Counted from the first letter of the stretch, positions 25,824 to 63,966 are shown. The stretch is 64,000 nucleotides of DNA from Haliotis cracherodii (GCF_022045235.1 NW_027266330.1:25172001-25236000); one strand, 5' to 3'. Translations and numbers: made by a program. Notes: generated by a model from the letters alone, not told the origin.

Positions 25824-25912
25824 ATGTCCCTATGTGGATACTGTGGTGAAGATCTCCCACCGGGGACTAAAAGTGTACAGGGAGAAAAGACGTACCATGA
25901 GGAATGTATCAA
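25824..25912 (+). CDS. Putative first coding exon of the Schlafen-like gene: LIM-half-like zinc finger
   Basis: MSLCGYCGEDLPPGTKSVQGEKTYHEECI (C-x2-C-x17-H-x2-C). Acceptor tctcattctag before 25794 and donor GTGAGT at 25913. Its phase-2 end matches the acceptor at 57243. Confidence 0.55.
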
Positions 25913-27859
25913 GTGAGTTTGTCGGTTTTATTACAAGTCTCTGTTGTGTTTCGGACCCAGGATGCCTCCGTGGTCTTGTGGTAGAGCGTCTGCTCGGAGA
26001 GCGGAAGGTCCGGGGTTCTATCCCCGGCCGCGTCATACCAAAAGACGTTAAAAGATGGTACTTGTTGTTACCCTGTCTGGCGCTCGGCATTAAGGGAGGG
26101 GCTAAAACAAGGACTGGTCGGATCGGAGTCAGTATACTGTGTCTGAGTGGGGTATTCATGTTAAACTGCGGCATGGTATGTCAGTGTGCTAGCACTATAA
26201 ATCGGCATCAGTCCGGACTAGTACAAGCAGCCACAACACACACACACTGTGCATGCACGTCGCTATATGGGTCATGCTCTAAACATTTCCTGTCCAAATG
26301 AATTTTCTTGAAAACAACTCATAATTCTGTTTTCAGATTTCTTGACAATCAAGATATTTATCAGATGTAAGCAATATTCTGATCAAATTACTGCTATAAC
26401 CTTATGTTAGCCAGCAAAATACCTTAAATGTGCAGAAATGTGCAGAAACTTGTTGTCCACCAATAAAAAATCAAACTTTCTCAAATTATCTTAAGTCTCT
26501 GGGAACCAGGGGTCCGGAAAATTTAAAATCCCAATCGGACATTTGCATTTAGGCCACGCCCCCTTCAAATAGCGTATTTTAGTACGACTTTTCACACACA
26601 TTACAAGTTTACGTATTCATAATATGAAGAATTATGAATTGTTTCAATTTAAATTGTTAATTTCACCGGACAATTAATAACAAATAATATCCTTTTAGAT
26701 ATACATGTAAAACATACGTTTGTTTCTGTTATAATAACGATCTGTTAACGTAGTAAACGGTCTAATTAATATTCAGGAGTTATATTCATGAGTCTGCTCA
26801 AGTGTACGGGTTGTAACATTTGGATCAAGACTATTATCCCATATTTGGTTATCACGTGACCACACGTGAAAAGTTTTTTTTTAAACTAAAGATTTTTTTA
26901 AAACAAGACAGATAATTTAATCACAAATACTAAAATATCGTTGAGAGCAATAGTTATTTGAATACTTTTTTCATCTGTACTTAATTATTGACCTTAAAAA
27001 AAATTGATATCGATCGTCCGAGAAAGCAAAATGGCGGTCAATCAAGATTCAATATACGACTAGCTACTGAAAACAATAAAATCTGCAAATCTTCATTGTA
27101 TGTCAACCAAGTCACGACTTACAAAATGATCGTCTAGACTTTGAGGGTTTGGCAGATCCGCTCGACTGATCTGCATCGGTCGACTGGCTGTCGTCATGCT
27201 TTCGCTTCTTGTCTGAGGTTACGTATCGTAACATTGTGAGGATAATGAGGTACATCTGACTGATTTAATGATTTTACGTCCGCTTCGCATTTATTGCATT
27301 TCGTGGACGGGGTAGGTGGGGAAGTAATGATAAATAGGTTAAATAAAAGAATCACCATACCCCAAAAAATGAAACTAACCGGGGGGTAACCTATGCTATC
27401 CTAGAGAAGGTACTAGAGAGTATTATTACTGGGGGTGTTATTTTCATTAAGAGACGTGGGGCCGTAACTTTATCTTACCGGGTGAAGGTTGGGTTGGTAC
27501 AGCATATTGGGTGATTGTAAGTATGCAGTTAGGCTGCATTAATAAATATAGGGAGTGGTTGATTAAAGAAAGAAACAGGGGTTAAATGAAGGGACTGTAT
27601 AAGCCGGTAATCCCGGGGGTTTGGGAGAAGGGGGTGGGGGGGGTATGACTTGGTTAGGTGGCGAGCGGTGTGGGCTTGTGGTAGGCGCTGGCTGGCTAAA
27701 CAGGTGTCTTTGTTTAGTGTGTGGATAACTGGGTTTTGGGCGCGGACGTCGGAGAGGACGGCTCGCGTTGGAAATTTGGATCCCGATCCGAAAGTTACTG
27801 GAGATTGTTGACTGGAGCAAAGTAATTTTATTTAGTTTTGTTTGGGAGATTCTAAATTC

Positions 27860-28750
27860 TGTCTAGGAGGTCTGCTTTGATGATAAATTGTGTTATTGCA
27901 TTGAGGATGTGGATAGGGTTGGAAGGGTTGAGGAGTAGTGAGAGGTTTTGTTTATAGTTAGGGGGGACAGCTAGGTAGAGTTCAGAGTGAAGGGTGTTAT
28001 AGAAAGGACAGCTGTTAAAAATATGGTACAAGTCTTCAGGTTTTTTACGGTATATACAATTTCCGTCCGGGTGTCTTCCTTATTTGTGGAGATTGTGGTT
28101 GAGGTTTGTGTTGCCGCTAATAATTCTTGATATGAGATTGTCAAGGTGGTTGGAGTTGTTGAAGTTGCGACATTTTAGATTGGGTTGCGTAAAAATTGAT
28201 CGGAGCCATTGCGAATTCGTGTTTTCGATTATGTTATTGTAGTTTTGGAGTTTGATAGACCTTTTTATTTTATTCTTGATTTCTACTTTCGAGGTATGGA
28301 AGTAGATTTCCAGAGATGGCTGTTGGGTGGCTATTTTGGCTGCGATGTGAGCTGTGTTATTTCCTGGTATATTGGTGTGTCCTGGGGCCCAGAGTAGGCT
28401 GATTTGTTTGTTGTTGTTATTGAGTTGGTTTGTGAGAGTAATAATATTGTTGATAAGGTCTGGACGCGTTCTGGAGTGTTTGTTTTGTATTTGTTTGAGT
28501 GACGTTAGTGAGTCGGATATTATTAGGAATTTTTGTTGGTTAATTGTTTTGGTAGCGTGTATTGCTGTAAGGATTGCTAGTAGTTCCCCTGTGTTATTGA
28601 TTGTGAAATTTTTATAGTGAAAGTTAGTAGTGACCTGGGGTGTTTGGTCTATGTGTATTCCTAATCCTGTCTTGTCGTTTGATTGGGATGCGTCTGTGTA
28701 GATGTGAGTGTGTGTAGGCCAGTTATTATGGATGTGTGTAAGTGTTAGAT
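27860..28750 (-). pseudogene. LINE RNase H and C-terminal Cys/His region
   Basis: IYTDAS, GELLAI, IISDSLTSL, WAPGHTNIPGN, followed by HPDGNC...EDLYHIFNSCPFY. Confidence 0.88.
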
Positions 28751-29272
28751 TTTTTAACTTATCCTGCATTACTCCGTATTGCATTTACTGCTGTCTTTGA
28801 CAGAGTGACGAACTGTGTGAGATCCAGCTGCTGAAGAAAGTTGTCCCAACCAGCTCAGGAGGCAGCGCCCTCTCACAGTCGGCACGTGACCCGGAAGTCA
28901 TGACGTCACACAAAAACACATAACTGCTTTGTCACCTCCACGGACGGACGTACTGTGTATCCCTTGTGGAAATTAAAGCTTATTATTTGTTTTTTATATT
29001 TTGCGTGTTTCTACATTCATTATATGCTGCTACATTGTTACCTGTTATGGGCCGTGACCTTAGGGTCTTCCCATTCGTAAATTGTAACGTTTATCGCTCG
29101 TCTGTGGCTCACGTCACAGTAATTTACGGGCGCAATGTTGTTCCCGCCATTTTGTTTTCTTTCCCGCCATTTTGGCCATTCACCACGTGGCCACGTAATG
29201 TCGTGTTCTGCGTTTTGAATTCTCTCTTTGGCTTGGGTAATACATTACATTTATGTATGTTGTTTTGGTGTG

Positions 29273-29683
29273 CTTAAAGCCTTGCCTTTTCGCTACCTCT
29301 CAGCGTAATTGTTTCTTCTCATAAACTTCAATATAATACGAAGTTTTTGAGTTACATTATGTCTCCCGTACTCTGTGGTTTTGCCACATGGTTACGTGTT
29401 TGCACATGGTTATGTGTTTGCTTAAAGCTATGCTTTTTCGCTACCTTTTAGCGTCATTGTTTGATCTCATAAACTTCATTGAAATACAAAGTTTCTGAAT
29501 CACATTATGCTTCCCATACTTTGTGATTGGTCACATGGTTATGTGTTTGCTTAAAGCTATGCTTTTTCGCTACCTTTTAGCGTCATTGTTTGATCTCATA
29601 AACTTCATTGAAATACAAAGTTTCTGAATCACATTATGCTTCCCGCACTTTGTGGCTTTGCCACATAGTTATGTTTTGCTTAA
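29273..29683. repeat. ~129-bp tandem repeat x3 inside DIRS #2
   Basis: cttaaagctatgctttttcgctacc...ggttatgtgtttg starts at 29273, 29421 and 29550. Confidence 0.85.
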
Positions 29684-30089
29684 ATTCCAGATTTTCTGCC
29701 TCGCTGCACTTGTTGCCGCGGGAACAAATCTGGTCGGGGCCGCCCCTTTCTGCCGTGATTGTACGACGCCCTGTACTTTCACAAGGCAGTGCCGATGTTG
29801 CAGTCATTCGTCGCTGTGATCCTTCAGCTCATGCGAGTATCCAGGACACACCTCGCTCAACGTGCTCGTCGACCCCCACCTACGTTGACGGCAGCAGCGC
29901 TCAGCGGAGCTTCGCAGTGCTCCCAGCACCAACGGCGGCTCCCAACGTAGAGTCTGCCTCCCATGGCACGACATACGACCGTTCACGGTCTCCTACTCCA
30001 CCGGCGGCTCCAGCGCTCCCAACGTAGAGTCTGCCTCCCCTGGCACGACATACGACCGTTCACGGTCTCCAACACCACCACATCAACGC

Positions 30090-30890
30090 TGATGTCTCCG
30101 GCGCCCCCGGCGCCTCCGGCGCCTCTGATGTCCCGGCGCTCCCGGCGCTCCCGGCGCCTCCGATGTCTCGGCGCCTCGTGCGCTCCCGGCGCCTCCGGCG
30201 CTCCCGGCGCTCCCGGCGCCTCTGATGTCTCGGCGCCTCGTGCGCTCCCGGCGCCTCCGATGTCTCGGCGCTCCCGGCGCCTCTGATGTCTCGGCGCCTC
30301 GTGCGCTCCCGGCGCCTCCGGCGCTCCCGGCGCCTCCGGCGTTTTGATGTCTCGGCGCCTCCGATGTCTCGGCGCCTCCGGCGCCTCTGATGTCCCGGCG
30401 CTCCCGGCGCCTCCGGCGCCTCAGATGTCTCGGCGCCTCGTGCGCTCCCGGCGCTCCCGGCGCCTCTGATGTCTCGGCGCCTCGTGCGCTCCCGGCGCCT
30501 CCGGCGCCTCCGATGTCTCGGCGCCTCCGGCGCCTCTGATGTCCCGGCGCTCCCGGCGCTCCCGGCGCTCCCGGCGCTCCCGGCGCTCCCGGCGCCTCAG
30601 ATGTCTCGGCGCCTCGTGCGCTCCCGGCGCCTCTGATGTCTCGGCGCCTCGTGCGCTACCGGCGCCTCTGATGTCTCGGCGCCTCGTGAATTCCCGGCGC
30701 CTCTGATGTCTCCGCGCTCCGGCGCCTCCGCATCCTCTGATGTCTTCGGCGCTCCCGGCGCCTCTAAGGTCTTTGATCTCATGATCTTCGACGCCTCTAA
30801 TGTCTCTGGCGCCTCTGACTACTCCGGCGCCTCAAGAGTTACGGAAGAAGCGCCTATGATATATCCGGCGCCTAAGATGACCTCCGGCGC
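30090..30890. repeat. GC-rich minisatellite built from 9-bp units inside DIRS #2
   Basis: Shuffled cccggcgct / ccggcgcct / ctgatgtct / cgtgcgctc units. Confidence 0.92.
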
Positions 30891-33800: not shown

Positions 33801-35378
33801 AGATCAGGGCGATCGTATTTACACTGGTTCTTCACGGTATACTGTTCCATCCAGTCGTTCAGGGAAGCCTGTTCGTGGCGATCGGACACCGCCTTCACCA
33901 ACCACTACTTCCGTGATGTAGCCTTGAAAGTTGTCGCCGGCGTTCACAGTTTTGGTCCCTGGTTGTAGCCCAACAGGTCATCTATCTCCGACGCCACTGA
34001 TTCTCCGATACCCTGAGCGGGGCCCGTCGACCTCTCTGGTGTTTATCACCCCAGACGAGACGGATCTCTTGCGTTCCGCATTCGCTCTTAGGTCAGTTTA
34101 GTTTTGGGTTACCCGACTCATTCTATTGCTGTCACCTATCCGGGTTTTACTTTTTGCATCAACTCTCGTTTCCTGACGACAGGAATGGTAGTAGATGTGG
34201 ACACCGGCGCCGACGCCAACGCTTCTCTGATACCTGAGCGGTGCCCGTCGACCTCACCGGTGTTCCTTGCCTCCAGCCTAGAGGGCTCTCCTGCGTTTCG
34301 CATTCGCTCTTGGGATTGGTCGTAAATTTTGCCGCCGACGCCGCTGATTCTTCGATTCCCCGAGCGGGGCCCGTCGAACTCTCTGGTGTTTATCGCCTCA
34401 GATTAGAGGGCTCTACTGCGTTTCGCTTTCGCTCTTCGGTAAGTTATATATTTTGGCAACACGCCTCATTGTATTTCGGTTACCTATTCGGGCGTTTCGT
34501 TTTTGCATCGACTCTTGTTTCCTGAAGACAGGAATGGTCGTAGATGTTCCGGTCATCACTGGTATGCGGTGCGGATTCATCGGACCTAGACGAGGGTTTA
34601 ATATGGTTCACATCTGCAGGTATGCCCACCGGCCATGCCGTCTGATAAAGATGCAATACGGAGTAATGCAGGATAAGTTAAAAAATTTAGTAAAATCTAA
34701 ATATTTTTTACATTTGTATACTTATCCTGCATTACGAAGTCTAAGTGCCCTCCCTTTCGCTACGCTACCTCCCCACGAAGTTTCAGATGTTATGTTTAAA
34801 GCAGTTATGTGTTTTTGTGTGACGTCATGACTTCCGGGTCACGTGCCGACTGTGAGAGGGCGCTGCCTCCTGAGCTGGTTGGGACAACTTTCTTCAGCAG
34901 CTGGATCTCACACAGTTCGTCACTCTGTCAAAGACAGCAGTAAATGCAATACGGAGTAATGCAGGATAAGTATACAAATGTAAAAAATATTTAGATTTTA
35001 CTAATTTTGCCTTATTTTCAGCTGGGATGCCGTTGCTTGGTGTGAACAGTTTGTGGAGGGTTGTATCTACTGGGGGGGAGGGGAGGTCGGCTATGTATTG
35101 TAGGGAGGGGGGTGTATGTATTATGTTGCTTAGATTGTGAGTGAGTATTAGCTTGTGCAGGTGGGTTATATATGGAGCTTGGTCAGGGGAATTTTGGAAT
35201 TTGTGTGCCGTCTGTTTGTTGATGTTGTTGTATTTTTGTTTTATTATTTTAAAAATTGGATTGTGTTGTGCCCCAGCCCAGTAGTTGAGAATAGTTTGTT
35301 GTATTCTGTGTTTGATGGAGAGTGTATTTGTGATTAGTAGTAAGGCGTGATGTGAGGTCCCAGTCCTGGTGCCGGTGG

Positions 35379-36286
35379 CTATTTTGAGGGCCTTGTATTG
35401 GATTGATTTTGTTTGTTATAGTTAGTAGTTGAGATGCTGCTTAGGACCGGAGCGGCATAGTCGATTTTGGATTGAATGAGTGTTTTGTAGATTTTGAGGA
35501 GGGTTTGTTTGTCGGACCCCCAATTATTACCTTTAATAGCTCTCATTAAATTTAAATCTTTTTCACAAGAGTTGACCATTTTCAGTATTTGGGGGCCCCA
35601 TGTAAGGTGTTGGTCAAATGTAACCCCTAAGAACTTGGCTTCTTTTTGATATGTAATTATTTTGTCATTAAGGTGAAGTTTGGGTGTGTAATTTTGCATA
35701 TACTGTTTTTTAAATAGCATGCCGGTGGTTTTATTGGTGTTAATTTGGAATCCCCATTTGGAAGCCCAATTTTGAATGTTGTTTAACACAGATTGCATTC
35801 TAGTTTTTAATAAATTGATGGAGGCCGAGGAGGTCCAAAAGGAAACGTCATCTGCGAATTGTGCAGTAGTGATTTTTTCAGTGTTTTTGGTGTCTGAAAA
35901 GATATCATTAATCATAAAATTAAATAGCGTTGGCGATAAGATGCTTCCTTGTGGGGTGCCGTTTTCAATGGGGTGAGTGTCGGAGAGGGTTTGATGGGAT
36001 TTAACTGTAATGTGTCTGTCTGATAGGAACGAGTGAATGAAGTTTAATATTCTCCCATTGATCTGATTGTTTTCAAGTTTTTTTAGAAGGCCGGTATGCC
36101 AGACCATGTTGAAAGCTTTGCTAAAATCTATAAATATGGCCAATGTGTATTGTTTCATTGATTGGGCTGTTCTGATGTCTTGTTCTAGGTGAAGGATGTG
36201 GTCTAGTGTTTGTCTGTTATTTGTGAAGCCGCACTGGTCTGGGCTTATAAGTCTGTTAGTAGAGTCTGTTATTAATAATGGATTGG
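35379..36286 (-). pseudogene. LINE reverse transcriptase fragment
   Basis: QCGF, FIDFSKAFNMVWH, GTPQGSILSPTLFN, QFADD, KFLGVTFD..LTW, WGSD..TLL.IY..LI.SKIDY. Confidence 0.93.
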
Positions 36287-37344
36287 GGTACATCGATGAT
36301 GCAAGGTATTTATGTACAGTTGTAAACACCTTTCACGCAAATTAACAAGATGTTCTTAGTAATTAATCCTCGATTAATCAGTGTCAACTCAGTTTATTGC
36401 CTATTACAGTGACTGACCGATTGGACTATCATGTAGGTACGATGTATTTACAGCAATCAAAACAAACAAAGCTTGTCAGTGTAGATAATCTTAATTGTGT
36501 TGCAACTGCAGACAGAAACTGCTCAGTCCTAACTGTTCATCATTTTGGTCAAAATTTAAAAATGTCCGGACAATACTTTTTAAAATGTCCGGTAAGCAAT
36601 ATTTTAAACCGGACATTTGAGATTCCCAATCGGACATGTCCGGTGCATATGACGGTTTCCGGACCCCTGCTGGGAACAAATACTTCCCAAAGCCCTGGTG
36701 ATTTATGTAGCATGACATCATGAAAGGCTGATAACAGCAGAAAAGCTATTGGTTTTCCACTTGGATTCATTATTTTCGGAAACAGTAATCTTGTCCAGAG
36801 TAATAGTGTCTTTCCTGTCACCAGATAGTACAAATACAAATAATAATTGCTCCTTTGGTAAGCCAGGAGGCTAAGGTCTTCGCAGGTCTCTTCCTTTCCA
36901 GTACTATCATGGCACCCTATGCTCAAGCAATTTGTATTGGTGCAGTGTCTTCAAAATAACTGGTAAATGTTGTCTTTTGATGTGTACTTTTTGTAGGTGT
37001 CTGTGCTGTCACCATGCATTTTGGGTTCCGAAATTGTTATTAAAAAAATCAAATATAATGAGTATACATTGTATTTGACTGTCAAAATGGAACTCAACCA
37101 ATGTGCTTTTTTCAGAGCAAGAGAGAAGTGATTGTCCTAAGCTGGCATTATGTCATAGTTTGTCTCCCCTGTCACTGTCTCTGCTGTCACCTTAAAAAAA
37201 GTGGCAGGACAGACATATTTAGGCGACAGCACAGACATATATTGTGTTCAATAAATGTTTCCACGTATATATATTAAAAGACAAAGAAAACATGAATGGT
37301 AATGTATTTTGTATGTTTGCTTGTTGCATGAAAATCTGAATATT

Positions 37345-38012
37345 ATTAACATTTGGGTCAATAAACACTGATTACACTGCACATTAGATCTTTGGTAACA
37401 GCACAGACTTTTAATAGTAACAGCACAGACACATTTCAGTGACAGCAAAGACATTTTAGGATTTTTTTTATCATGTTGACACAAATAATGAACAATTATT
37501 CATTTACTCGCATTACTGTTGTACATGATTAAGAAATGTAACATATTTAGCAAACTTAAATGAAAGTAATGTTACATGATCACTTCAAACACCGTGTCTA
37601 TGAGTGACTGTGACAGCACAGACACTTAACAGTAACAGCACAGACATTTAGTGTTTAATAGAGATTTTGAGAAAGTTTTGTTCAATGTTTCAGTGTCTTT
37701 AAAACTCTATCTCTTAGGCTTTTGTTAGTTACAGGAAAAATTGAATTTCCATTAACATTTGGGTCAATAAACACTGATTACACTGCACAGTAGAACTTTG
37801 GTAACAGCACAGACATTTAATAGTAACAGCACAGACACATTTCATTGATAGCAAAGATTTTTTTAGGATTTTTTACCAAGTTGACACAAATAATGAACAA
37901 TTATTCAATTTGCTCTCCCTACTGTTGTACATAATTAAGAAATGTAACATATTTAGCAACTTTAAATGAAAGTAATTTTACATGATCACTTCAAACACCC
38001 TGTCTATGCGTG
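37345..38012. repeat. ~260-bp direct duplication in the left arm of Sola2-like #2
   Basis: attaacatttgggtcaataaacactg...catgatcacttcaaacacc at 37345 and 37751. Confidence 0.85.
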
Positions 38013-41000
38013 AGGGAATGAGAGAAGTGGAGGTGTGTGCTGACAGAATGGAGTGTATGAGTAGGGGAAAAGAGAGAAGTGGAGGTGTGTGCTGACAGAA
38101 TGGAGTGTATGAGCGGGGAAAAGAGAGAAATGGAGATGTGTGCTGACAGAATGGAGTGTATGAGTGGGGAAAAGAGAGAAGTGGAGGTGTGTGCTGACAG
38201 AATGGAGTGTATGAGTGGGGGAAAGAGAGAAGTGGAGGTGTGTGCTGACAGAATGGAGTGTATGAGTAGGGGAAAGAGAGAAGTGGAGGTGTGTGCTGAC
38301 AGAATGGAGTGTATGAGTGGGGAAAGAGAGAAGTGGAGGTGTGTGCTGACAGAATGGAGTGTATGAGCGGGGGAAAGAGAGAAGTGGAGCTGTGTGCTGA
38401 CAGAATGGAGTGTATGAGACGGGGAAAAGAGAGAAGTGGAGGTGTGTGCTGACATAATGGAGTGTATGAGTGGGAAAAGAGAGAAGTGGAGGTGTGTGCT
38501 GACAGAATGGAGTGTATGAGTCGGGGAAAGAGAGAAGTGGAGGTGTGTGCTGACAGAATGGAGTGTATGAGTGGGGGAAAGAGAGAAGTGGAGGTGTGTG
38601 CTGACATAATGGAGTGTATGAGTGGGAAAAGAGAGAAGTGGAGGTGTGTGCTGACAGAATGGAGTGTATGAGTCGGGGAAAGAGAGAAGTGGAGGTGTGT
38701 GCTGACAGAATGGAGTGTATGAGTGGGGGAAAGAGAGAAGTGGAGGTGTGTGCTGACAGAATGGAGTGTATGAGTCGGGGAAAGAGAGAAGTGGAGGTGT
38801 GTGCTGACAGAATGGAGTGTATGAGTGGGGGAAAGAGAGAAGTGGAGGTGTGTACTGACAGAATGGAGTGTATGAGTGGGGGAAAGAGAGAAGTGGAGGT
38901 GTGTGCTGACAGAATGGAGTGTATAAGTCGGGGAAAGAGAGAAGTGGAGGTGTGTGCTGACAGAATGGAGTGTATGAGTGGGGGAAAGAGAGAAGTGGAG
39001 GTGTGTGCTGACAGAATGGAGTGTATGAGTGGGGGAAAGAGAGAAGTGGCGGTGTGTGCTGACAGAATGGAGTGTATGAGTGGGGAAAAGAGAGAAGTGG
39101 AGGTGTGTGCTGACAGAATGGAGTGTATGAGTGGGGAAAAGAGAGAAGTGGAGGTGTGTGCTGACAGAATGGAGTGTATGAGTGGGGAAAAGAGAGAAGT
39201 GGAGGTGTGTGCTGACAGAATGGAGTGTATGAGTCGGGGGAAAGAGAGAAGTGGAGGTGTGTGCTGACAGAATGGAGTGTATGAGTAGGGGAAAGAGAGA
39301 AGTGGAGGTGTGTGCTGACAGAATGGAGTGTATGAGTGGGGAAAGAGAGAAGTGGAGGTGTGTGCTGACAGAATGGAGTGTATGAGTGGGGGAAAGAGAG
39401 AAGTGGAGCTGTGTGCTGACAGAATGGAGTGTATGAGACGGGGAAAAGAGAGAAGTGGAGGTGTGTGCTGACATAATGGAGTGTATGAGTGGGAAAAGAG
39501 AGAAGTGGAGGTGTGTGCTGACAGAATGGAGTGTATGAGTCGGGGAAAGAGAGAAGTGGAGGTGTGTGCTGACAGAATGGAGTGTATGAGTGGGGGAAAG
39601 AGAGAAGTGGAGGTGTGTGCTGACATAATGGAGTGTATGAGTGGGAAAAGAGAGAAGTGGAGGTGTGTGCTGACAGAATGGAGTGTATGAGTCGGGGAAA
39701 GAGAGAAGTGGAGGTGTGTGCTGACAGAATGGAGTGTATGAGTGGGGAAAAGAGAGAAGTGGAGGTGTGTGCTGACAGAATGGAGTGTATGAGTGGGGAA
39801 AAGAGAGAAGTGGAGGTGTGTGCTGACAGAATGGAGTGTATGAGTGGGGAAAAGAGAGAAGTGGAGGTGTGTGCTGACAGAATGGAGTGTATGAGTGGGG
39901 GAAAGAGAGAAGTGGAGGTGTGTGCTGACAGAATGGAGTGTATGAGTCGGGGAAAGAGAGAAGTGGAGGTGTGTGCTGACAGAATGGAGTGTATGAGTGG
40001 GGGAAAGAGAGAAGTGGAGGTGTGTGCTGACAGAATGGAGTGTATGAGTGGGGGAAAGAGAGAAGTGGAGGTGTGTGCTGACAGAATGGAGTGTATGAGT
40101 GGGGAAAAGAGAGAAGTAGAGGTGTGTACTGACAGGATGGAGTGTATGAGTGGGGGAAAGAGAGAAGTGGAGGTGTGTACTGACAGAATGGAGTGTATGA
40201 GTCGGGGAAAGAGAGAAGTGGAGGTGTATACTGACAGAATGGAGTGTATGAGCAGGGAAAGAGAGAAGTGGAGGTGTGTGCTGACAGAATGGAGTGTATG
40301 AGCGGGAAAAGAGAGAAGTGGAGGTGTGTGCTGACATAATGGAGTGTATGAGTTGGGGAAAGAGAGAAGTGGAGGTGTGTGCTGACAGAATGGAGTGTAT
40401 GAGCGGGGAAAAGAGAGAAGTGGAGGTGTGTGCTGACAGAATGGAGTGTATGAGTGGGGGAAAGAGAGAAGTGGAGGTGTGTGCTGACAGAATGGAGTGT
40501 ATAAGTCGGGGAAAGAGAGAAGTGGAGGTGTGTGCTGACAGAATGGAGTGTATGAGTGGGGGAAAGAGAGAAGTGGAGGTGTGTGCTGACAGAATGGAGT
40601 GTATGAGTGGGGAAAAGAGAGAAGTGGCGGTGTGTGCTGACAGAATGGAGTGTATGAGTGGGGGAAAGAGAGAAGTGGAGGTGTGTGCTGACAGAATGGA
40701 GTGTATGAGTGGGGGAAAGAGAGAAGTGGAGGTGTGTGCTGACAGAATGGAGTGTATGAGTGGGGGAAAGAGAGAAGTGGAGGTGTGTGCTGACAGAATG
40801 GAGTGTATGAGTGGGGGAAAGAGAGAAGTGGAGGTGTGTGCTGACAGAATGGAGTGTATGAGTGGGGAAAAGAGAGAAGTGGAGGTGTGTACTGACAGGA
40901 TGGAGTGTATGAGTGGGGGAAAGAGAGAAGTGGAGGTGTGTACTGACAGAATGGAGCGTATGAGTCGGGGAAAGAGAGAAGTGGAGGTGTATACTGACAG

Positions 41001-47000: not shown

Positions 47001-48819
47001 AGTGGGGGAAAGAGAGAAGTGGAGGTGTTTGCTGACAGAATGGAGTGTATGAGTGGGGAAAAGAGAGAAGTGGAGGTGTGTGCTGACAGAATGGAGTGTA
47101 TGAGTGGGGGAAAGAGAGAAGTGGAGGTGTGTGCTGACAGAATGGAGTGTATGAGTGGGGAAAGAGAGAAGTGGAGGTGTGTACTGACAGAATGGAGTAT
47201 ATGAGTGGGGGAAAGAGAGAAGTGGAGGTGTGTGCTGACAGAATGGAGTGTATGAGTGGGGAAAGAGAGAAGTGGAGGTGTGTACTGACAGAATGGAGTG
47301 TATAAGTCGGGGAAAGAGAGAAGTGGAGGTGTGTGCTGACAGAATGGAGTGTATGAGTGGGGGAAAGAGAGAAGTGGAGGTGTGTGCTGACAGAATGGAG
47401 TGTATGAGTGGGGAAAGAGAGAAGTGGAGGTGTGTACTGACAGAATGGAGTGTATGAGTGGGGAAAAGAGAGAAGTGGAGGTGTGTGCTGACAGAATGGA
47501 GTGTATGAGTGGGGAAAGAGAGAAGTGGAGGTGTGTGCTGACAGAATGGAGTGTATGAGTGGGGAAAAGAGAGAAGTGGAGGTGTGTGCTGACAGAATGG
47601 AGTGTATGAGTGGGGAAAAGAGAGAAGTGGAGGTGTGTGCTGACAGAATGGAGTATATGAGTCGGGGAAAGAGAGAAGTGGAGGTGTGTGCTGACAGAAT
47701 GGAGTGTATGAGTGGGGATAAGAGAGAAGTGGAGGTGTGTGCTGACAGAATGGAGTGTATGAGTAGGGGAAAGAGAGAAGTGGAGGTGTGTGCTGACAGA
47801 ATGGAGTAAATGAGTGGGGGAAAGAGAGAAGTGGAGGTGTGTGCTGACAGAATGGAGTGTATGAGTGGGGGAAAGAGAGAAGTGGAGGTGTGTGCTGACA
47901 GAATGGAGTGTATGAGTAGGGGAAAGAGAGAAGTGGAGGTGTGTACTGACAGAATGGAGTGTATGAGTTGGGGAAAGAGAGAAGTGGAGGTGTGTGTTGA
48001 CAGAATGGAGTGTATGAGTGGGGAAAGAGAGAAGTGGAGGTGTGTGCTGACAGAATGGAGTGTATGAGTGGGGGAAAGAGAGAAGTGGAGGTGTGTGCTG
48101 ACAGAATGGAGTGTATGAGTGGGGAAAAGAGAGAAGTGGAGGTGTGTGCTGACAGAATGGAGTGTATGAGTGGGGGAAAGAGAGAAGTGGAGGTGTGTGC
48201 TGACAGAATGGAGTGTATGAGTGGGGGAAAGAGAGAAGTGGAGGTGTGTGCTGACAGAATGGAGCGTATGAGTGGGGGAAAGAGAGAAGTGGAGGTGTTT
48301 GCTGACAGAATGGAGTGTATGAGTGGGGAAAAGAGAGAAGTGGAGGTGTGTGCTGACAGAATGGAGTGTATGAGTGGGGAAAGATAGAAGTGGAGGTGTG
48401 TACTGACGGAATGGAGTGTATGAGTGGGGGAAAGAGAGAAGTGGAGGTGTGTACTGACAGAATGGAGTGTATGAGTGGGGAAAGAGAGAAGTGGAGGTGT
48501 GTACTGACAGAATGGAGTGTATGAGTGGGGGAAAGAGAGAAGTGGAGGTGTGTGCTGACAGAATGGAGTGTATGAGTGGGGAAAGAGAGAAGTGGAGGTG
48601 TGTGCTGACAGAATGGAGTGTATGAGCAGGGAAAGAGAGAATCGGAGGTGTGTGCTGACAGAATGGAATGTATGAGTGGGGGAAAGAGAGAAGTGGAGGT
48701 GTGTACTGACAGAATGGAGTGTATGAGTCGGGGAAAGAGAGAAGTGGAGGTGTGTGCTGACAGAATGGAGTGTATGAGTGGGGGAAAGAGAGAAGTGGAG
48801 GTGTGTGCTGACAGAATGG
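38013..48819. repeat. 50-51 bp GA-rich satellite, about 210 copies, with higher-order blocks
   Basis: Unit gagagaagtggaggtgtgtgctgacagaatggagtgtatgagtgggggaaa. Confidence 0.98.
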
Positions 48820-49837: not shown

Positions 49838-50926
49838 GACCCGTGACGATCCGGGATAGAATAGGTCTTCAGCAACCCATGCTTGCCGTGAAGGGTGACT
49901 ATGCTTGTCATAAAAGGCGACTAACGGCATCGGGTGGTCAGGCTCGCCGACTTGGTTGATGCATGTCATCGATCCCAATTGTGTGGATCGATGCTCATGA
50001 TATTAATCACTGGATTGTCTGGTCCAGACTCGATTATTTACAGACCGCCGTTATATAGCTGGAATATTGCTGAGTGCGGCGTTAAACAACAAACCAACCA
50101 AGTAAGAGGCGACTAACAGGATCGGATGGTCAAGCTCGCTGACTTGGTTGATGCATGTCATCGATCCCAATTGTGTGGATCAATGCTCATGATATTAATC
50201 ACTGGATTGTCTGGTCGAGACTTGATTATTTACAGACCGCTGTTATATAGTTGGAATATTGCTGAGTGCGGCGTTAAACAACAAACCAACCAACCAACCA
50301 AGTAAGAGGCGACTAACGGGATCGGGTGGTCAGGCTCGCTGACTTGGTTGATGCATGTCATCGATCCCAATTGTGTGGATCAATGCTCATGATAATAATC
50401 ACTGGATTGTCTGGTCGAGACTTGATTATTTACAGACCGCTGTTATATAGTTGGAATATTGCTGAGTGCGGCGTTAAACAACAAACCAACCAACCAACCA
50501 AGTAAGAGGCGACTAACGGGATCGGGTGGTCAGGCTCGCTGACTTGGTTGATGCATGTCATCGATCCTAATTGCGTGGAGACCCGTGAAGATTCCGGGGT
50601 AGAATAGGTCTTCAGCAACCCATGCTTGCCATAAAAGGGGACTAACGGGATCGGGTGGTCAAGCTCGCTGACTTGGTTGATGCATGTCATCGATCCAAAT
50701 GGCGTGGATCGATGCTCATGATATTAATCACTGGATTGTCTGGTCCAGACTCGATTATTTACAGACCGCCGTCATATAGCTGGAATATTGCTCAGTGCGG
50801 CGTTAAACAACAAACCAACCAACCAATTGCGTGGATCGATGCTCATAAAGTCAATCACTGGATTGTCTGGTCCAGACTCGATTATTTACAGACCGGCGTT
50901 AAACAACAAACCAACCAACCAACCAA
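49838..50926 (+). mobile_element. Head-to-tail cluster of 5'-truncated V-SINE-like repeats
   Basis: gacccgtga.gatccggg.tagaataggtcttcagcaacccatgcttg..gtaagaggcgactaa (V-domain-like) with (ACCA)n tails. ~200-bp units start at 50102, 50302 and 50502. Confidence 0.85.
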
Positions 50927-56173: not shown

Positions 56174-57118
56174 TTATTATCCCCCCGGCATATAATGGGG
56201 GGGGGGGGGGGGGGGGATATAGCGATCAGCCAGTCTGTCTGTCCGTCCGTCTGTCCGTCCGTAATCATTTCCTTTTCCGGGGCAGAATTTGAAAACCATT
56301 CAGTGTATTTGATTGAAACTTGGCAAATCTATCAGGCACATACTGAAGTGGTGCCTTTTGATATTTTGGAATTTTTCAAATTTTTATTTTTTTACATTTT
56401 TATGGAATGAAGTTGGACATAGACACAGTTGGGAATGGGGTTCGTTTCCGGGGCAGAATTCGAAAACCATTCAGTGTATTTGATTGAAACTTGGCAAATC
56501 TTTCAGGCACATACTGAAGTGGTGCCTTTTGATATTTTGGGATTTTTCTAATTTTTATTTTTTTAAATTTTTATGGAATGAAGTTGGACATAGACTTTCA
56601 TTGGGGATGGGGTTCGTTTCCGGGGCAGAATTTGAAAACCATTCAGTGTATTTGATCGAAACTTGGCAAATCTATCAGGCACACACTGAAGTGGTGCCTT
56701 TTGATATTTTGGGATTTTTCTGATTTTTATTTTTTTTAATTTTTATTGAATGAAGTTGGACATAGACTCAATTGGGGGATGGGGTTCGTTTCCGGGGCAG
56801 AATTTGAAAACCTTTCAGTGTATTTGATCGAAACTTGGCAAATCTATCAGGCACATACTGAAGTGGTGCCTTTTGATATTTATTTTTTTACAAATTTTTA
56901 TTTGTTACAATTTTTATGGAAAGAAGTTGGACCTAGACTCCCTTGGGGAACGGGTTCATTTCCGATCCAGAATTCGAAAACCATTCAATGGGTAAACAAT
57001 GTATGCTTCTTAAAGATCATTTAAGTGTTGACTCATTCCATACAGAATTGCACATTTACTAGTGGTAACTTTACAGACAGCTGCCGGGGGGATATGTCAT
57101 CTTTCTGATGACTCTTGT
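56174..57118 (+). mobile_element. HINE / DINE-1-like non-autonomous Helentron with an internal ~172-bp tandem array
   Basis: subTIR tatccccccggc / gccggggggata, a (GTCY)n microsatellite, four-plus units starting at 56274, 56445, 56617, 56789 and 56959, and a 3' palindrome gtcatc-tttct-gatgac. Confidence 0.9.
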
Positions 57119-57242
57119 TAGAATATACTATTATGAGGAGATATGGATAAAGAGTCAATCTTTTTTACATCAGTTAGATTCTTCTCACATCTTGCTCTTC
57201 AACCAAGTGTTACGGATATAGAAAATCTCTTTAACATTTCAG

Positions 57243-58625
57243 TCTAAATATTCCAAGAGTACAGGAAGCACTTGAGACCTTCAGAAACATTTCCACACAG
57301 TCCAATGTTTTGTGCATGGCCATACATGTCAATTATATACACGGACTAGCAAAGGAAAACAAGGAACAAAATAAAAGGAAGAAGGAAAAGCGGGCTATCA
57401 AAACCAAGGAATTGTTGAAAAATGTCACCGCACTCCGCAATTCTAATTCTGGTCATCTACTGATTCACTTTGTTGGACGAGAAAAAGAAGACACCTTTAC
57501 AGGGGCCTTTGATGAATTTGCTGATGAAAAACTTCAGACTTTAATTCAAGATGGAAGCCTGTTCACTGATGTCTACACGAAACGGTTCTTGAGTGATTAT
57601 GCAATAGATCTAGACAAACTGCAGAAGAAGCAACAGGGAGTACTTGAAGAGATATCTGGGAAGCTGGAGAAGAAAACCAAGGAACATCAAAGTCAACAGG
57701 AACGGCTGGATAAGTTGAAATTGAAGGCTAAGCATGCTAAGGAGACACTAGATGAGGAGCTTGATGAAATACTGCAGCAGAGACAAATAGTAGTTGAGAC
57801 ATCGAAGGAAATTGAAAGGTTGAAGAACATTAAGTCAAAAGAAGAAAAGAAACTGTCTGTGTGTGTTGATAAGGATACATTAAAGGATACACATCAGTAT
57901 AAAGATTTCCTTGTACTGTATGTTGAAGGGGGTGTTTATCTCACAACATCTGACTCTAAAACCAAAATAGCTCTTGATGAACGAATCATCAGTCCATCTG
58001 ATCAAACTTTGATAACATTCCTGAAAAACAGAACTCAGCTTAAATCAGTGCATCCTTCTGGACATACATTGCAGGATTTAACGAGACTGCACGAGAGTAG
58101 ATCAGTTCAATTCAAAGGTTACTTCAAAGGGAAGGAAACAGATGAGAACATCGTTGGTTACATGTTTGATGACCACAAACTTCTTGAATACGTTAGTGCA
58201 TTTACAAAGAACACAGATGGTGGCACCTACTTCCTTGGCATAGCAGAGAAAGACCGTTCTTTCAATGGAAGTCTTTATAAGTCAAGGTTTATGGACATTC
58301 AGCAAGTTGCTATCTGTAGTCAACAGACTGTAGAAGCTAAAATAAAGGAGGGGGTTTCAAAGGGTGTTTTAATCTGTGACTATGATGGACATAAAATACA
58401 AAATGGCCTGGTGGATGTCTTTTTCATTCCAAGAGACAGTGATATGCAGGGTACTGCTGCGAAGGTGCCTGGAGGTTTTGTAATCGAAATACACGTCCAG
58501 CCTGTCAGTGGCATAGTGTTCTATGACACCCAGGGACCGCTGGCTTACAGAGTGGAAGGGGACGCAGTCACAGCATACTCTGTTGAAGAGTGGTTCCATG
58601 CCGTCACTGTGAACAGCGTAGTGAG
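57243..58625 (+). CDS. Schlafen-like gene, large exon: Schlafen core (AlbA_2 RNase fold) with a coiled-coil insertion
   Basis: VTALRNSNSGHLLI (cf. ALLNSGGGVI), ESRSVQFKGY (cf. ES..VEFK.F), EYVSAFTKNTDGGTYFLGI (cf. YIPAFANTGGGYLFIGV), FVIEIHVQP..GIVF...P.AY.V....V.....EEW. Acceptor ttcag, donor gtaaac. Confidence 0.88.
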
Positions 58626-58783
58626 GTAAACAAAGATATCACAAAGAATTCAGTAAGTTTACTAAGTTTATACATCATTTGTTATTTTCACCATATTTGT
58701 CAGTTCCATTACACTACAAGACTATACTAGTATTTACGGATACTGTTATGGTTGAACAATATATTTCTATTGCTATTGCTTAG

Positions 58784-58862
58784 ATGTACATTCACACCAG
58801 TAACCGTCTCCATATCTTTTGGTACCCTTACCGACATGTTCTTCTTAAAAGACCAAGTTCAG
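58784..58862 (+). CDS. Schlafen-like gene, small exon (phase 2 to 0)
   Basis: Bounded by AG/GT, open, and phase-compatible with both neighbours (CTFTPVTVSISFGTLTDMFFLKDQVQ). Confidence 0.5.
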
Positions 58863-59336
58863 GTACAACAAATAGCGACGCAGTGACACACACAGCTTAC
58901 TTGAAAACATAGGTTTCTGTTCTCCCTTGCACATTATACCAGACAATAAAAGACGATGTGATGATGTCAGGGAGGAAAAGAATGTTTCCATCAGAAACAT
59001 GTTAAATGATAATTATGGAATCGAATGGTTGAAATATATGAGGTTGAGGTTGAGGTATATGCGCTAAATGTTAAATGTGCTACATGTTCAATTAATCTTA
59101 GTGAAATATGGTTACAGTTGAAATTCGAAACTTATGTATAGAGGAACACACACATAAATATTAAAAGTAATTTATGATACTATCTAAAGTATGGTGATAG
59201 TCTAGTGGTACAAAAGACATGATTATGAATACAATAGATTTTTAACATTTGGATAAAAATAATTTCTGTTTGTTGATATGGCCCGATGATGTTATTGGGG
59301 TCTCATGTCTCACGGATTTCAATGTCAATGTTTCAG

Positions 59337-59457
59337 GTAATAATGCAGAACATACCAGGGCGAGAATTGGGCTTAAACAGCAAGGATTTTCGGCGTCCTC
59401 GTTTGACACCAATCAAAGAGAGCATTACAGCGATTAAAAGTCATTTTGTGAAGAAAG
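59337..59457 (+). CDS. Schlafen-like gene exon (phase 0 to 1)
   Basis: VIMQNIPGRELGLNSKDFRRPRLTPIKESITAIKSHFVKK; a paralogous exon lies at 63843-63966. Confidence 0.72.
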
Positions 59458-59603
59458 GTAAACGGTAAAATGTTTACATTCTAATGCTGATTTTGAGATG
59501 TCATGACAAATTGACGAATGACCTTGTATTTTGATTATAAACAATTGTCAGTTGTTGTACTTTCTAATGTCCCAGTAAAATACAAATAACACTAATATTA
59601 CAG

Positions 59604-60375
59604 GTACACTAAATGTAGTTCCATCAAGGATACCCGCGCACCTGTGTGATGTCAGAGATGCCTTCATTTCACTGCTGAAGACGGACGGGGTTCTGTACCA
59701 TGAAGACGTTGTTACTGGTGAATATACGAGTGAAAGAGACACCACATGCCTTTTGTATTTATCAGAATCATTAGCAACATTGTTAGATTTCCCTGTGTCA
59801 AGGACGCAAGGAAATACGAGATGTGACATCTTCATAGCAATGCCCCATCAACCCCTCATGGTGCTGACTGTGATTGACGATGGCAGTGAAACCGAGGAGA
59901 TAAGAAATTATAACACTAGTGTGGCTAGAGAAGTGACTTCAAAACTACACAGGTTTACCAATGAGAGCATCAACGTCATTCATGGAGTCTTGAGTTTGAG
60001 TGACCTGACAGACACAGATACATGCTTCATAAAGTTACAGAGAATTGCAGCATTAGCTGCATCCTTTGTTCCGAAGACTTCTCTATTGATGACGCCATCA
60101 AAATATGAACACGTGATGATGGCCTTCTGGGCAGCTGTTGCTGAGACAAAGTCAATCCTGACAGAGATAGGAGAAGTAGATGACAGTTGTATCAACTTTC
60201 TCCCCACAGATCAGTGTGTATATCTTGTGGAGAACATTGACAGTAGATATGTTCAGGCAAGATGGGAGCCCGGCAGTGGAACCACAACTCTGATGCTGGA
60301 GGTGGCCAGGAGGCTGAGCAGACTGGGGGAAACTCTCCTGATATGCAACTCACTGGAAGAGAGGGACAGACTCAG
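59604..60375 (+). CDS. Schlafen-like gene exon: linker (SWADL-like) region and degenerate P-loop helicase start
   Basis: CDIFIAMPHQPLMVLTVI..YNTSVAREVTSKL; FLPTDQCVYL..WEPGSGTTTLMLEVARRL..TLLIC. Phases match the flanking exons. Confidence 0.85.
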
Positions 60376-60726
60376 GTAGTATGATATTGTGGCCTTAATT
60401 ATATGACTACCAAAAACAAACTTTGTGTTGCTCTTCTGGACAATAGTGAGATGATATTCTTAAATAGCAGGCGACCATTATTCACATCTGTAGTACTAAC
60501 CATTAATTATCAAAGAATATGTCGATTTTTTTCATCTAATTATCATTGAATGAAACTAAGGACAATACAGTATACTACAATTATGATAGACTCAAAGGGA
60601 CCACTTATTTTAGTTCGTTATAACCGTAGTTCGTTATAGGCATATATTCAGCAAATGAACGGGATCAAAACACATTTTGTTATATCCATCAGTTCGTTAT
60701 AAGCGTGTTCATTATAAACGTAGTTT

Positions 60727-61075
60727 ACTTGGTTGGTTGGTTTGTTGTTTAACGCCGCACTCAGCAATATTCCAGCTATATGACGGCGGTCTGTTAATCC
60801 AGTGATTAATATGAGCATTGATCCATGCAATTGAGATACGATGACCAACCAAGTCAGCGAGTCTGACCACCCAATTACGTTAGTCTGCTCTTACGACAAG
60901 CATAGTCGCCTTTTAAGGCAAGCATGATTTGCTGAAGACCTGTTCTACCCCGGATCTTCACGGGTCCGACACAATTGGGACACCTTGACATGCATCAACC
61001 AAGTCAGCGAATCTAACCACCAGATTACGTTAGTCGGCTCTTACGACAAGCATAGTCTCACTTTACGACCAGCAT
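60727..61075 (-). mobile_element. V-SINE-like copies in an intron
   Basis: Reverse complement of the 49838-type unit: (TTGG)n...gctgaagacctgttctaccccggatcttcacgggtc. Confidence 0.82.
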
Positions 61076-61601
61076 AGAATAGAATAGAATAGAAATAGTT
61101 GAGAGAGTTACCCAATTACATTGCTAACATACGCTAATCAAACGGCAACTTCATTTTAAGTTTCAAATCCGTTTCATTTTATCTTATCACATTTTCATTG
61201 TTCATTACATTACAAGGGGATTTCACGTTTAGTTGATTACAAGGGCATTTCACGTTTAGTTGATTGCAATGTTTGTTCATGTTTAGTTAATCTGAATTTA
61301 GTCTTCCACTGCGAACCATTGGTAGCAGAGCGTGGTTGCTCTGAATATGGGCTAGTTAGTAATAGTGACTGGGGTTGATAGTTCTTAGGGTCAACGTACA
61401 TCATTCAAAGATCTTGGACGCGATAGCTTGAGTATTTAAGTTTTGAATTGGACAAAACTTTATTAGCATGATTTCTTCCATAACAGACACATGAGTACAA
61501 TGTCTGAAGCCCATATCCCAATGTGTGATCCCCAACCGTGATATAGCTGGAATATTGCTAAATATCTCATTAAAATACTGCCAAATCTTTCATTTAATCT
61601 G

Positions 61602-62390
61602 GATACAATACATGTACTCAACATAAGATACGACACAATACATGTACTCAACATAAGATACGACACAATACATGTACTCAACATAAGATACGACACAATA
61701 CACTTACTCAGTATTAGATACGACACAGTACATGTACTCAACATTAGATACGACACAATACAGGTACTCGACATTAGATACGACACAATACATGTACTCA
61801 ACATAAAAAATGACACAATACATGTACTCAACATTAGATACGACACAATACAGGTACTCAACATTATATACGACACAATACACTTACTCAGTATTAGATA
61901 CGACACAATACATGTACTCAACATTAGATACGACACAATACAGGTACTCAAGATTAGATACGACACAATACATGTACTCAACAACAAAAATGACACAATA
62001 CAGGCACTCAACATTAGATATGACACAATACAGGTACTCAACATTAGATACGACACAATACATGTACTCAACATTAGATACGACACAATACAGGTACTCA
62101 ACATTAGATATGACACAATACAGGTACTCAATCTTCGATACGACACAATACAGGTACTCAACATTAGATACGACAACATACAGGTACTCAACATTACAGG
62201 CACTTAACATTCGACACGACACAATACATATTATCAAGATTAGATATGACACAATACAGGCACTCGCCATTCGATAAGACACAATACAGGTACTCGCCAT
62301 TCGATAAGACACAATACATGTACTCAAGATTAGATACGACACAATACACGTACTCAATATTAGATATGACACAATACATGTACTCAACAT
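61602..62390. repeat. 30-bp minisatellite, ~26 copies
   Basis: Unit catgtactcaacattagatacgacacaata. Confidence 0.95.
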
Positions 62391-62747
62391 CGTGTGAGTG
62401 GCTGGTGCTGTCGGTGCTGCCGCTGGTGGTGCCGCTGGTGCTGCCTGGTGTCATCACTGATTTTCAGTGATCCATTCATATAGTTTTCATCCGCTAGTTT
62501 GCCCTTTACGATCAATAGAATCTGTTTCGGTGGATAATCTATACTGGTTATTCTCTTGCATTGACAGTTTATATCTTCGTTCATATGGTCAATTTTTGGT
62601 TTTGATATGTCATTCTAAAACCAAAATGGTTTGTATTCTCACAAGAATGAAGGATTTTCAGGTTGACGTCATGCTTTTCGATATGCAACCAGTGACTTTA
62701 ACCTTAAACGAAACCGTTCCCTTGTTGCCTGCCTATATCATATACTT

Positions 62748-63080
62748 GTCTGTTACAATAGGTAAGACTGACCTTCAAATAAGACAAGTCAATGTCAGAT
62801 ATATTCTCAAGTACTCCCATCTCTGACGTGTCTGTTACAATAGGTGAGACTGACCTTCAAATAAGACAAGTCAATGTCAGATATATTCTCAAGTACTCCC
62901 ATCTCTGACGTGTCTGTTACAATAGGTGAGACTGACCTTCAAATAAGACAAGTCAATGTCAGATATATTCTCAAGTACTCCCATCTCTGACGTGTCTGTT
63001 ACAATAGGTGAGACTGACCTTCAAATAAGACAAGTCAATGTCAGATATATTCTCAAGTACTCCCATCTCTGACGTGTCTG
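62748..63080. repeat. 82-bp tandem repeat x4
   Basis: Unit gtgtctgttacaataggtgagactgaccttcaaataagacaagtcaatgtcagatatattctcaagtactcccatctctgac. Confidence 0.95.
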
Positions 63081-63191
63081 ACGTGTGTCCGAGAATATGG
63101 TAGAGAAAAGGAGCAATGGGATGATAACTTTCTCACAGTTACTGGTTCAAATGAAACATTATTATTATTTGGAAATATGTTCCCTTTGCAG

Positions 63192-63322
63192 GTCAGTTCA
63201 CTCGTCCACAATCTCAACATTTGATGTGGAAGATCTGAACATGTCCAAGTTTGAGAATGTGGTGCATGAAACTCGAAGTTATCTGTTCGAACCTTGTGGT
63301 CGACAATGGCTGTTCCTGAAAG
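63192..63322 (+). CDS. Schlafen-like gene exon with a degenerate Walker B-like segment
   Basis: Acceptor tttgcag in phase 2, matching 60375. SVHSSTISTFDVEDLNMSKFENVVHETRSYLFEPCGRQWLFLK. Confidence 0.7.
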
Positions 63323-63842
63323 GTATTGATGTACCGTAAAGTTATGTATATTGTGTGTTGTTTAAGGGTCATGGCTAATACGTTCATTTACATGTATATG
63401 AGAACTTTGCTGACAATGCATCATATTCAAACATACAATACTTAAAGGTTATTATCGGTAATCCCTAAATTTTAATTCAAAGACGGCATTTATCAGGTAC
63501 TTAATACATCAGACTTGACTTATAACTGAATGTTGATTTTCAGGTACTCCAAACAGGTCACGTGATACACATGTACAAACAGTAAGTCCAAACTAAATAC
63601 ATGTCTATCAATTTGTATTTGTATATACTAATTTGGACAAATGTACCGCAGGATCACTCAATATACACCTGAAAACTAAAATGACCTGTTGATCAGAATG
63701 TTTGTATCAGTAGCAAAGATACAGATACAGGTAAAGCATATGTGCTTGTGGCCACTGTTTTATATTTACTTGAAATGTCAGTTATCACTGACTTTCTGTA
63801 TGTTTTAGAACTGCTGATTGTTACATGTGACAGTATTTTCAG

Positions 63843-63966
63843 ATTAATACATCAAACGGGAAGGAGGATGGTTTCAATTATTTCAACAGCAAAGACTTTC
63901 TGCGCCCGCAGTTACAGCAGACAAGAGAACATATCACTGACATTAAGCGTCACTACATGAGCAAAG
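63843..63966 (+). CDS. Exon paralogous to 59337-59457 (start of a repeated module or of a gene duplicate)
   Basis: INTSNGKEDGFNYFNSKDFLRPQLQQTREHITDIKRHYMSK-G; same 0-to-1 phases and the NSKDF.RP.L....E.IT.IK.H...KG pattern. Confidence 0.72.

Follow-up and report, generated by a model that had tools for sequence, protein, structure and literature searches.

A probable split Schlafen unit in the black abalone, with core and linker on two consecutive reading frames

Does a long Schlafen have to be a single chain? To our knowledge, work on Schlafens has concentrated almost entirely on mammals; there, core, linker and helicase lie on one chain, and it is not clear what the linker does. The question is raised by a locus of the black abalone Haliotis cracherodii (genome 1.18 Gb) in the stretch G000:C67:25172001-25236000, 64,000 nucleotides that are called the window here and in which all coordinates below are counted unless another contig is named. 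An original prediction, made from the sequence by itself, had joined six exons of this stretch into one frame and thus into one polypeptide, a Schlafen core with a zinc finger in front of it, a coiled coil inside it and a degenerate nucleoside triphosphatase (NTPase) behind it. Based on assembled transcripts, paralogs and fold models, we consider it probable that the locus is instead a split Schlafen unit, in which one spliced RNA carries two consecutive frames whose domains follow the order known from the long Schlafens of vertebrates. Searches of the literature yielded no account of how Schlafens are built in molluscs.

The splicing between the two halves carries most of this reading. Contigs assembled from three public runs of one study (X1-X3) were mapped on positions 57236-63235; these runs are only guessed to be RNA, and they behave like it, with empty introns and GT..AG joints. 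In contigs of all three, exon 2 is joined to the next exon by 58652>59337, so that the donor used is TCA|GTAAGT at 58652 and not the predicted AG|GTAAAC at 58625. As this donor lies beyond the in-frame TAA at 58627-58629, the spliced RNA keeps the stop, and two open reading frames (ORF1 and ORF2) result. The contigs further contain two joints, 59455>59602, equivalent to 59457>59604 after a shift of 2 nt, and 60372>63189, equivalent to 60375>63192 after one of 3 nt; both were also seen in X4, a fourth run from another organism and study. Both of these predicted junctions and the acceptor 59337 are thereby confirmed by the contigs of three runs, and with them exons 4-6 and the acceptor of exon 2 stand as predicted. 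No contig of X1-X3 covers 58653-59336, contig depth is equal on either side of 58652>59337 (about 25-37), and among the joints listed (14 further joints are unlisted) the only one leading into 59337 is derived from ORF1. Equal depth, empty intron and ORF1-derived joint favour a dicistronic main transcript. A retrocopy as the source of these joints was rejected, since a whole-genome search at 85% identity or more found four loci, every one with introns, and no intron-less copy.

Each of the six predicted exons is open in its assigned phase and bounded by AG/GT, and five of them are real; their original numbering is kept here. The exception is the third, 58784-58862. No contig of X1-X3 covers it (bases 58636-58652 fully account for the depth of its bins), it is hit by a 62-bp deletion in paralog B, which removes most of the stretch, and by an 11-bp deletion in paralog C, and it is missing from the RefSeq models of relatives. 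It looks like an artefact of frame fitting.

The two frames that remain are of quite different length. ORF1 comprises 490 codons (29 + 1 + 460), and both its size and its end, ...NSVVR, match exactly the 490-aa RefSeq protein of paralog A, XP_071085392.1 (P0001), which served as stand-in for ORF1 in fold and Pfam work. The ORF1 stop has a counterpart in paralogs A (TAA) and B (TAG), the open frame of paralog C also ends in ...NSVVR, and in ten of the ten paralog core exons examined, paralog C included, a stop lies a few codons past the last core helix. ORF2 begins at ATG 59343, 6 nt past the acceptor 59337 and, in the mRNA, 29 nt beyond the ORF1 stop; it is read in the -1 frame with respect to ORF1, and its start codon is kept in all four close copies. 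From here ORF2 matches residues 1-1337 of XP_071085522.1 (P0019), the 1337-aa RefSeq protein of paralog C that starts MQNIP... and served as stand-in for ORF2, in collinear exons from 59343 to about 102880. ORF2 thus spans some 43 kb and continues beyond the window, and the gene does not end at 63966 as had been proposed.

Other ways of connecting the frames were considered. An open -1 frame extends from 13 codons ahead of the ORF1 stop into ORF2; a programmed -1 frameshift was rejected because there is no slippery heptamer and the 23 nt between stop and donor diverge fast (6 of 23 positions differ from paralog B). Also rejected were the joining of exon 1 to 59337 by skipping of exon 2, which offers phase 2 where phase 0 is needed and reads K and then TAA, and a splice from donor 58625 straight to 59337, which is out of frame and meets an immediate TAA.

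Both halves are maintained by selection. Comparison of the paralogs gave dN/dS values of 0.32-0.53 (exon 2), 0.20-0.46 (exon 5) and 0.38-0.63 (second copy of exon 5), and by this measure of sequence divergence both frames are shown to be under purifying selection. Two whole-genome searches found at least 50 pairs in which a core is followed by a linker module on the same strand, 1.4-7 kb apart, on at least 11 contigs. Exon 5 matched 42 cluster representatives in a library of 1.84 billion proteins. Not one of them had a Schlafen core ahead of the module, which either starts 5-184 residues from the N-terminus or is itself the second copy, and all 15 of the clusters that were looked up consist of Haliotis proteins named 'uncharacterized'. 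The absence of the core from these representatives and the Haliotis origin of the clusters looked up indicate that the split is a property of the family rather than an accident of this copy. RefSeq likewise lists the 490-aa and 1337-aa proteins separately at paralogous loci, each as 'uncharacterized'. With the retained stop after the core, the kept ATG and the separate RefSeq halves, the single polypeptide of the original prediction does not hold.

The best surviving alternative is that two neighbouring genes with promoters and mRNAs of their own are found here and that 58652>59337 stems from read-through (conjoined) transcripts. In H. rufescens the two halves do carry different RefSeq gene identifiers, and at a paralog at 32.9 Mb the RefSeq start codon of ORF2 lies upstream of an internal acceptor, about 1.5 kb past the ORF1 stop, a position that fits an independent first exon. 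At the present locus, however, an ATG only 6 nt behind an acceptor requires an upstream exon, and the sole listed joint into 59337 (14 further ones being unlisted) comes from ORF1, across an intron without cover and at equal depth, so that we regard two separate genes as unlikely. Rather improbable is one long Schlafen of about 1,800 aa, be it the functional form or a minor, regulated isoform alongside the short core protein. The phase-0 donor GTA|GTGAGG at 58620/58621 could join ...NSV to VIMQNIPGRE..., fusing ORF1 in frame with 59337; with this donor-like hexamer the phases agree and no additional exon is needed, features shared by paralogs A and B, and the product would have exactly the domain order of vertebrate long Schlafens. 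Yet a joint 58620>59337 was not seen in the contigs, 58652 is the only donor among the joints listed for the three runs, no fusion of core and module occurs among the RefSeq models of four Haliotis species, and more distant paralogs have unrelated core tails without a conserved Val codon. A decaying long Schlafen, disabled by the stop and no longer translated beyond it, would account for the in-frame stop between domains and for the degenerate catalytic and P-loop residues, but it is very improbable given that both frames are intact over some 1,800 codons with dN/dS below 1, that stop and ATG are conserved, and that at least 50 loci and four species show this layout. The six-exon, single-frame model can practically be set aside, since its phases add up and all its boundaries are AG/GT but its third exon has no RNA cover, is deleted in paralog B and is missing from every annotated relative.

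In the split unit that we prefer, ORF1 is a two-lobed Schlafen core with a zinc knuckle and a coiled-coil hairpin (Table 1). Exon 2 matches Pfam PF04326 (SLFN_AlbA_2) with 31.4 bits at a cut-off of 25.3, P0001 does so with 32.7 bits, and in HMMER exon 2 aligns to the N-domain of pig SLFN11 in three collinear pieces, namely the N-lobe, the active-site strand and the C-terminal sheet. The fold was modelled on P0001, a paralog of 90% identity, from an alignment of 24 family sequences with AlphaFold2 (AF2; mean predicted local distance difference test, pLDDT, 70). All 25 of the 25 Foldseek matches of this model at E<=0.001 were cores of SLFN11, SLFN13, SLFN14, SLFN12 or SLFN5 (E 1.9e-8 to 2e-4, probability 1.00), in agreement with the Schlafen core that had been predicted. 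The inserted hairpin and the pLDDT of 70 keep the template modelling (TM) scores to these cores at only 0.24-0.36. The coiled coil inside the core is likewise borne out by both the alignment and the model, where its two helices comprise residues 146-191 and 198-234, mostly at pLDDT 84-97. According to the family alignment this insert is limited to the present subfamily, with a shorter form in one more distant paralog.

ORF2 opens with the linker. Exon 5 had no match in Pfam or the PDB when searched as a single sequence, and a profile of 19 family members matched SLFN5 (3.5e-7), SLFN11 (4.7e-5) and SLFN14 (0.015). The matches to SLFN5 and SLFN11 consist of two collinear parts, a SWAVDL-type linker and then the start of the helicase, with the matched helicase stretch LNLLT..Q...L..N......VHGLPGSGKT...DEAQNF...WIFL. 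An AF2 model of exon 5 reached a pLDDT of 89.3 and a predicted TM (pTM) of 0.88, and its top 13 Foldseek matches were all SLFN5, SLFN14, SLFN11 or SLFN12, with SLFN5 at TMq 0.60 over 245 columns (E 1e-7); the Pfam family SLFN_GTPase-like stays below threshold in relatives (24.1 vs 27 bits). The Walker A-like WEPGSGTTT at 60263-60289 has Thr for Lys, and the helicase domain ends right after the Walker B-like strand (VVHET). The truncated, degenerate NTPase of the original prediction is therefore found in exons 5-6 as a Schlafen linker with a truncated helicase, and the helicase portion is, as far as its motifs tell, a dead stub corresponding to the first third of a Schlafen helicase. The unit of exons 4-6 is repeated once (63843-63966, 65277-66050 and 66160-66291) in copies about 52% identical, and in the second copy the P-loop is fully lost (LHSKREATV). 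Behind the second module follow a coiled-coil and low-complexity region and then a last exon with PRY/SPRY, at L026:8194-8880 outside the window, which matches the PRY/SPRY of TRIM14 with E 7.5e-7; Pfam SPRY remains sub-threshold in this tail (20 bits, cut-off 26.3), and no Pfam match to RING or B-box was obtained in P0019, P0020 or P0023.

Table 1 Features of the split Schlafen locus in window coordinates.
Feature	Position	Strand	Basis or remark
ORF1 exon 1: start codon and C-x2-C-x17-H-x2-C (C2HC) zinc-knuckle motif	25824..25912	+	29 codons + 2 nt
ORF1 exon 2 as transcribed	57243..58652	+	coding 57243-58629; donor in RNA 58652|GTAAGT
Schlafen core N-lobe (ALRNSNSGHLLIH motif)	57361..57591	+	aligns to pig SLFN11 residues 36-102; invariant in family
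Antiparallel coiled-coil hairpin of ~90 aa between lobes	57589..57855	+	gap in other family members; AF2 model of P0001
Schlafen core C-lobe (Pfam SLFN_AlbA_2)	58093..58557	+	Pfam, SLFN11 alignment
Core site residues	E284 58093-58095; Q289 58108-58110; A334 and E335 58243-58248	+	
GTGAGG, possible alternative phase-0 donor (exon end 58620)	58621..58626	+	sequence; conserved in paralogs A, B
ORF1 stop TAA within transcribed exon	58627..58629	+	sequence and contigs
Predicted exon 3: not an exon	58784..58862	+	no RNA cover; deleted or indel-ridden in paralogs B, C
ORF2 first coding exon (exon 4), ATG 59343, KDFRRP...IKSHF motif	59337..59457	+	contigs; ATG kept in 4 paralogs
ORF2 exon (exon 5): Schlafen linker (SWADL/GTPase-like) domain and helicase start	59604..60375	+	contigs, profile, fold
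ORF2 exon (exon 6): degenerate Walker B-like strand (FENVVHET) and WLFLK end of helicase stub	63192..63322	+	joint 60375>63192
Putative 38-nt ORF2 exon (G)TPNRSRDTHVQT, would restore phase between modules	63544..63581	+	matches P0019 residues 341-353
First exon of second linker module (FNSKDFLRP...IKRHY)	63843..63966	+	sequence, P0019 match

Compared with the group III Schlafens (SLFN5, SLFN11, SLFN13 and SLFN14), the locus has the same order of AlbA_2 core, linker and start of a superfamily 1 (SF1) helicase, with sequence-profile and fold matches over core, linker and the region from Walker A to Walker B. It differs from them in that core and linker are found on two stop-separated frames and not on one polypeptide. 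Its core has gained a zinc-knuckle exon and the hairpin, and the catalytic E-E-D reads E-Q-A. Its helicase is cut after motif II, with the Walker A Lys changed to Thr, so that no complete SF1 helicase is left; in ORF2 the unit of linker and stub is duplicated, and a coiled coil and PRY/SPRY replace the rest of the helicase. SLFN12, a group II member with core and linker, is a functional Schlafen without helicase, to which the linker fold matches over 190 columns with a probability of 1.00; unlike the abalone unit, SLFN12 is a single chain and has neither SPRY nor the coiled-coil insert. The C-terminal exon of ORF2 with the predicted coiled-coil region before it recalls TRIM14-type proteins, although RING and B-box were not found by Pfam in P0019 and the N-terminal half is Schlafen-derived. 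By its core and its linker the locus is a member of the Schlafen family, one without a single chain, an intact E-E-D triad or a complete helicase.

If the chain is divided between core and linker, the two products may bind each other. When exons 2 and 5 were modelled as a complex, the score was 0.68 against 0.00 for the best control, a mark that is reached by 51 of 78 solved complexes and by 2 of 108 mismatched pairs. Its runs agreed in at least 94% of contacts, with a partner pLDDT of at least 66, and the predicted interface is formed by the N-lobe and the base of the coiled-coil hairpin. The model lends support to a core docked on the linker, short of showing that the two bind. The products of ORF1 and ORF2 could reassemble non-covalently, with the ORF2 linker docked on the core, and the coiled coils might oligomerise the complex. 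The PRY/SPRY domain would then bind a pathogen or stress ligand and, through this binding, control the binding or cleavage of RNA by the core in innate defence. Translation of ORF2 could be achieved by reinitiation, from a promoter of its own that went unseen, or through a minor fused isoform.

Several points weigh against the reading as a translated, functional split unit. Contigs lose rare isoforms and are blind to the ends of transcripts; they could have missed either a promoter belonging to ORF2 or a fused isoform of low abundance. Efficient translation of a second cistron past an ORF of 490 codons is not expected in animals. In solved Schlafens (SLFN5, SLFN11, SLFN12 and SLFN14) core and linker touch within one chain, and the favourable complex score may reflect the memory of the model for these intrachain contacts. 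The catalytic triad of SLFN13 is E-x4-E ... D (E205/E210/D248), and PDB titles name E209 in SLFN11 and E211 in SLFN14; where SLFN11 has ES-x3-EFK ... GVDD, the abalone core has ES-x3-QFK ... GIAE. E284, K291 and E335, the last of which adjoins A334, are invariant or nearly so in the family. This pattern suggests some conserved site in the core, but nuclease activity should not be assumed from it and the effector activity is uncertain. The locus could encode an RNA-defence protein, as originally proposed, with a canonical nuclease triad that is not intact. What points to an immune role is the expansion of the family and the types of domains it contains.

The split is of interest in that the chain is cut exactly at the boundary of core and linker, with both halves under selection and at dozens of loci, which offers a direct test of the linker as a docking and regulatory surface of the core. 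The linker half is attached to different sensor modules, here a TRIM-like PRY/SPRY, and in more distant family members the linker module is joined to an nSTAND3 NTPase and ankyrin repeats; specific to the present locus is the combination of a coiled-coil insert in the core with a SPRY-bearing partner. These features point to a large, unannotated family of innate-immune genes in a threatened and disease-hit mollusc. If it is indeed from the dicistronic RNA that both proteins are translated, expression would be coupled in a way that is unusual for an animal. A broader and rather unlikely proposal is that abalone Schlafens are obligate two-cistron mRNAs, in which a single capped transcript would yield a core and a linker-bearing sensor at a fixed ratio, the two reassembling into a holoenzyme; various partners (SPRY, STAND-ankyrin and GIMAP) would fit the same core. 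Were this true, eukaryotes would have an operon-like immune module in these Schlafens, and the single chain of vertebrates would have a naturally divided counterpart.

Among the relatives with other partners, the Schlafen linker module heads proteins with the nSTAND3 NTPase and ankyrin repeats, as seen in P0030, P0036 and P0047 of H. rubra and in the cluster of P0055; one cluster contains a protein named immune-associated nucleotide-binding (GIMAP)-like.

At the other end of the locus, exon 1 (89 nt) is found 31 kb upstream of exon 2, and the junction across this distance is supported indirectly by the agreement of RefSeq models, upstream peptides and contig ends. The RefSeq models P0001-P0004, from three Haliotis species, open with M-x-x-C-x-Y-C-G...H-x-x-C-I and continue directly as LNIPR..., and the boundary of exons 1 and 2 in four RefSeq models of paralogs and orthologs reads ...HEECI-N/T-LNIPR.... 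Each close paralog is preceded, at a distance of 8-28 kb and in the same orientation, by a peptide like that of exon 1, and just one such copy is found upstream of this gene. Two contigs lose their match at 57239, each with 190 extra bases upstream, which is the break expected for an exon ending in ...TCAA vs an intron ending in ...TCAG. The four zinc ligands of exon 1 are conserved across the family alignment, so that of the predicted zinc finger the CxxC...HxxC exon stands. Its description as half of a LIM domain does not: neither exon 1 nor full-length P0001 had a Pfam match to LIM, there is a single C2HC module where LIM needs two contiguous ones, and the halves of the zinc ligands are up to about 190 aa apart in paralogs. 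The motif would best be called a C2HC zinc knuckle of unassigned fold, judged by its residues, with a likeness to the first LIM finger that is one of spacing only.

The wide spacing is seen in P0006, P0008 and P0014-P0017, which belong to paralogs on the same contig (C67) and to other Haliotis; their CxxC and HxxC halves lie about 190 aa apart and enclose short beta-type repeats (V.V....I.Y...G..P.GF). Paralog C has two zinc-knuckle exons like exon 1 upstream, at G000:C67:26300670-26300756 and 26313713-26313799, 15 and 28 kb off, which may be alternative first exons or include a remnant.

Intron 1 owes its size to a 10.8-kb satellite and to retroelement fragments. The satellite (38005-48819) consists of 213 copies of a 51-bp unit with 95% matches and is strongly G-rich on the + strand (GC skew about 0.8), while the retroelement remains, on the minus strand, comprise an RNase H ORF at 28080-28784 (E 8e-14) and a reverse-transcriptase ORF at 35379-36329 (E 8e-37). 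GC-rich minisatellites of the CCGGCGCTC type with periods of 9, 35, 44 and 123 occupy 30089-30764, and a similar GC-rich array whose open frames read SRRSRR/APGAP is located at L013:3700-4480, about 4 kb beyond the window end. At 49911-50579 there are 3.4 copies of a 200-bp unit (TAAGAGGCGACTAACGGGATCGGGTGG...) that is also inserted twice in introns of paralog C (L017) and is probably a mobile element resembling a short interspersed nuclear element (SINE-like). Some 250 bp ahead of the acceptor of exon 2 lies a 172-bp tandem repeat of 4.2 copies (56274-56987). Scans for Rfam families and tRNAs gave no match in 25000-64000. Finally, in the intron between exons 5 and 6, the stretches 60436-61235, 61436-61635 and 62436-62635 are covered by thousands of contigs in every run, with a summed depth of up to 1.8e5, and are high-copy transcribed repeats.

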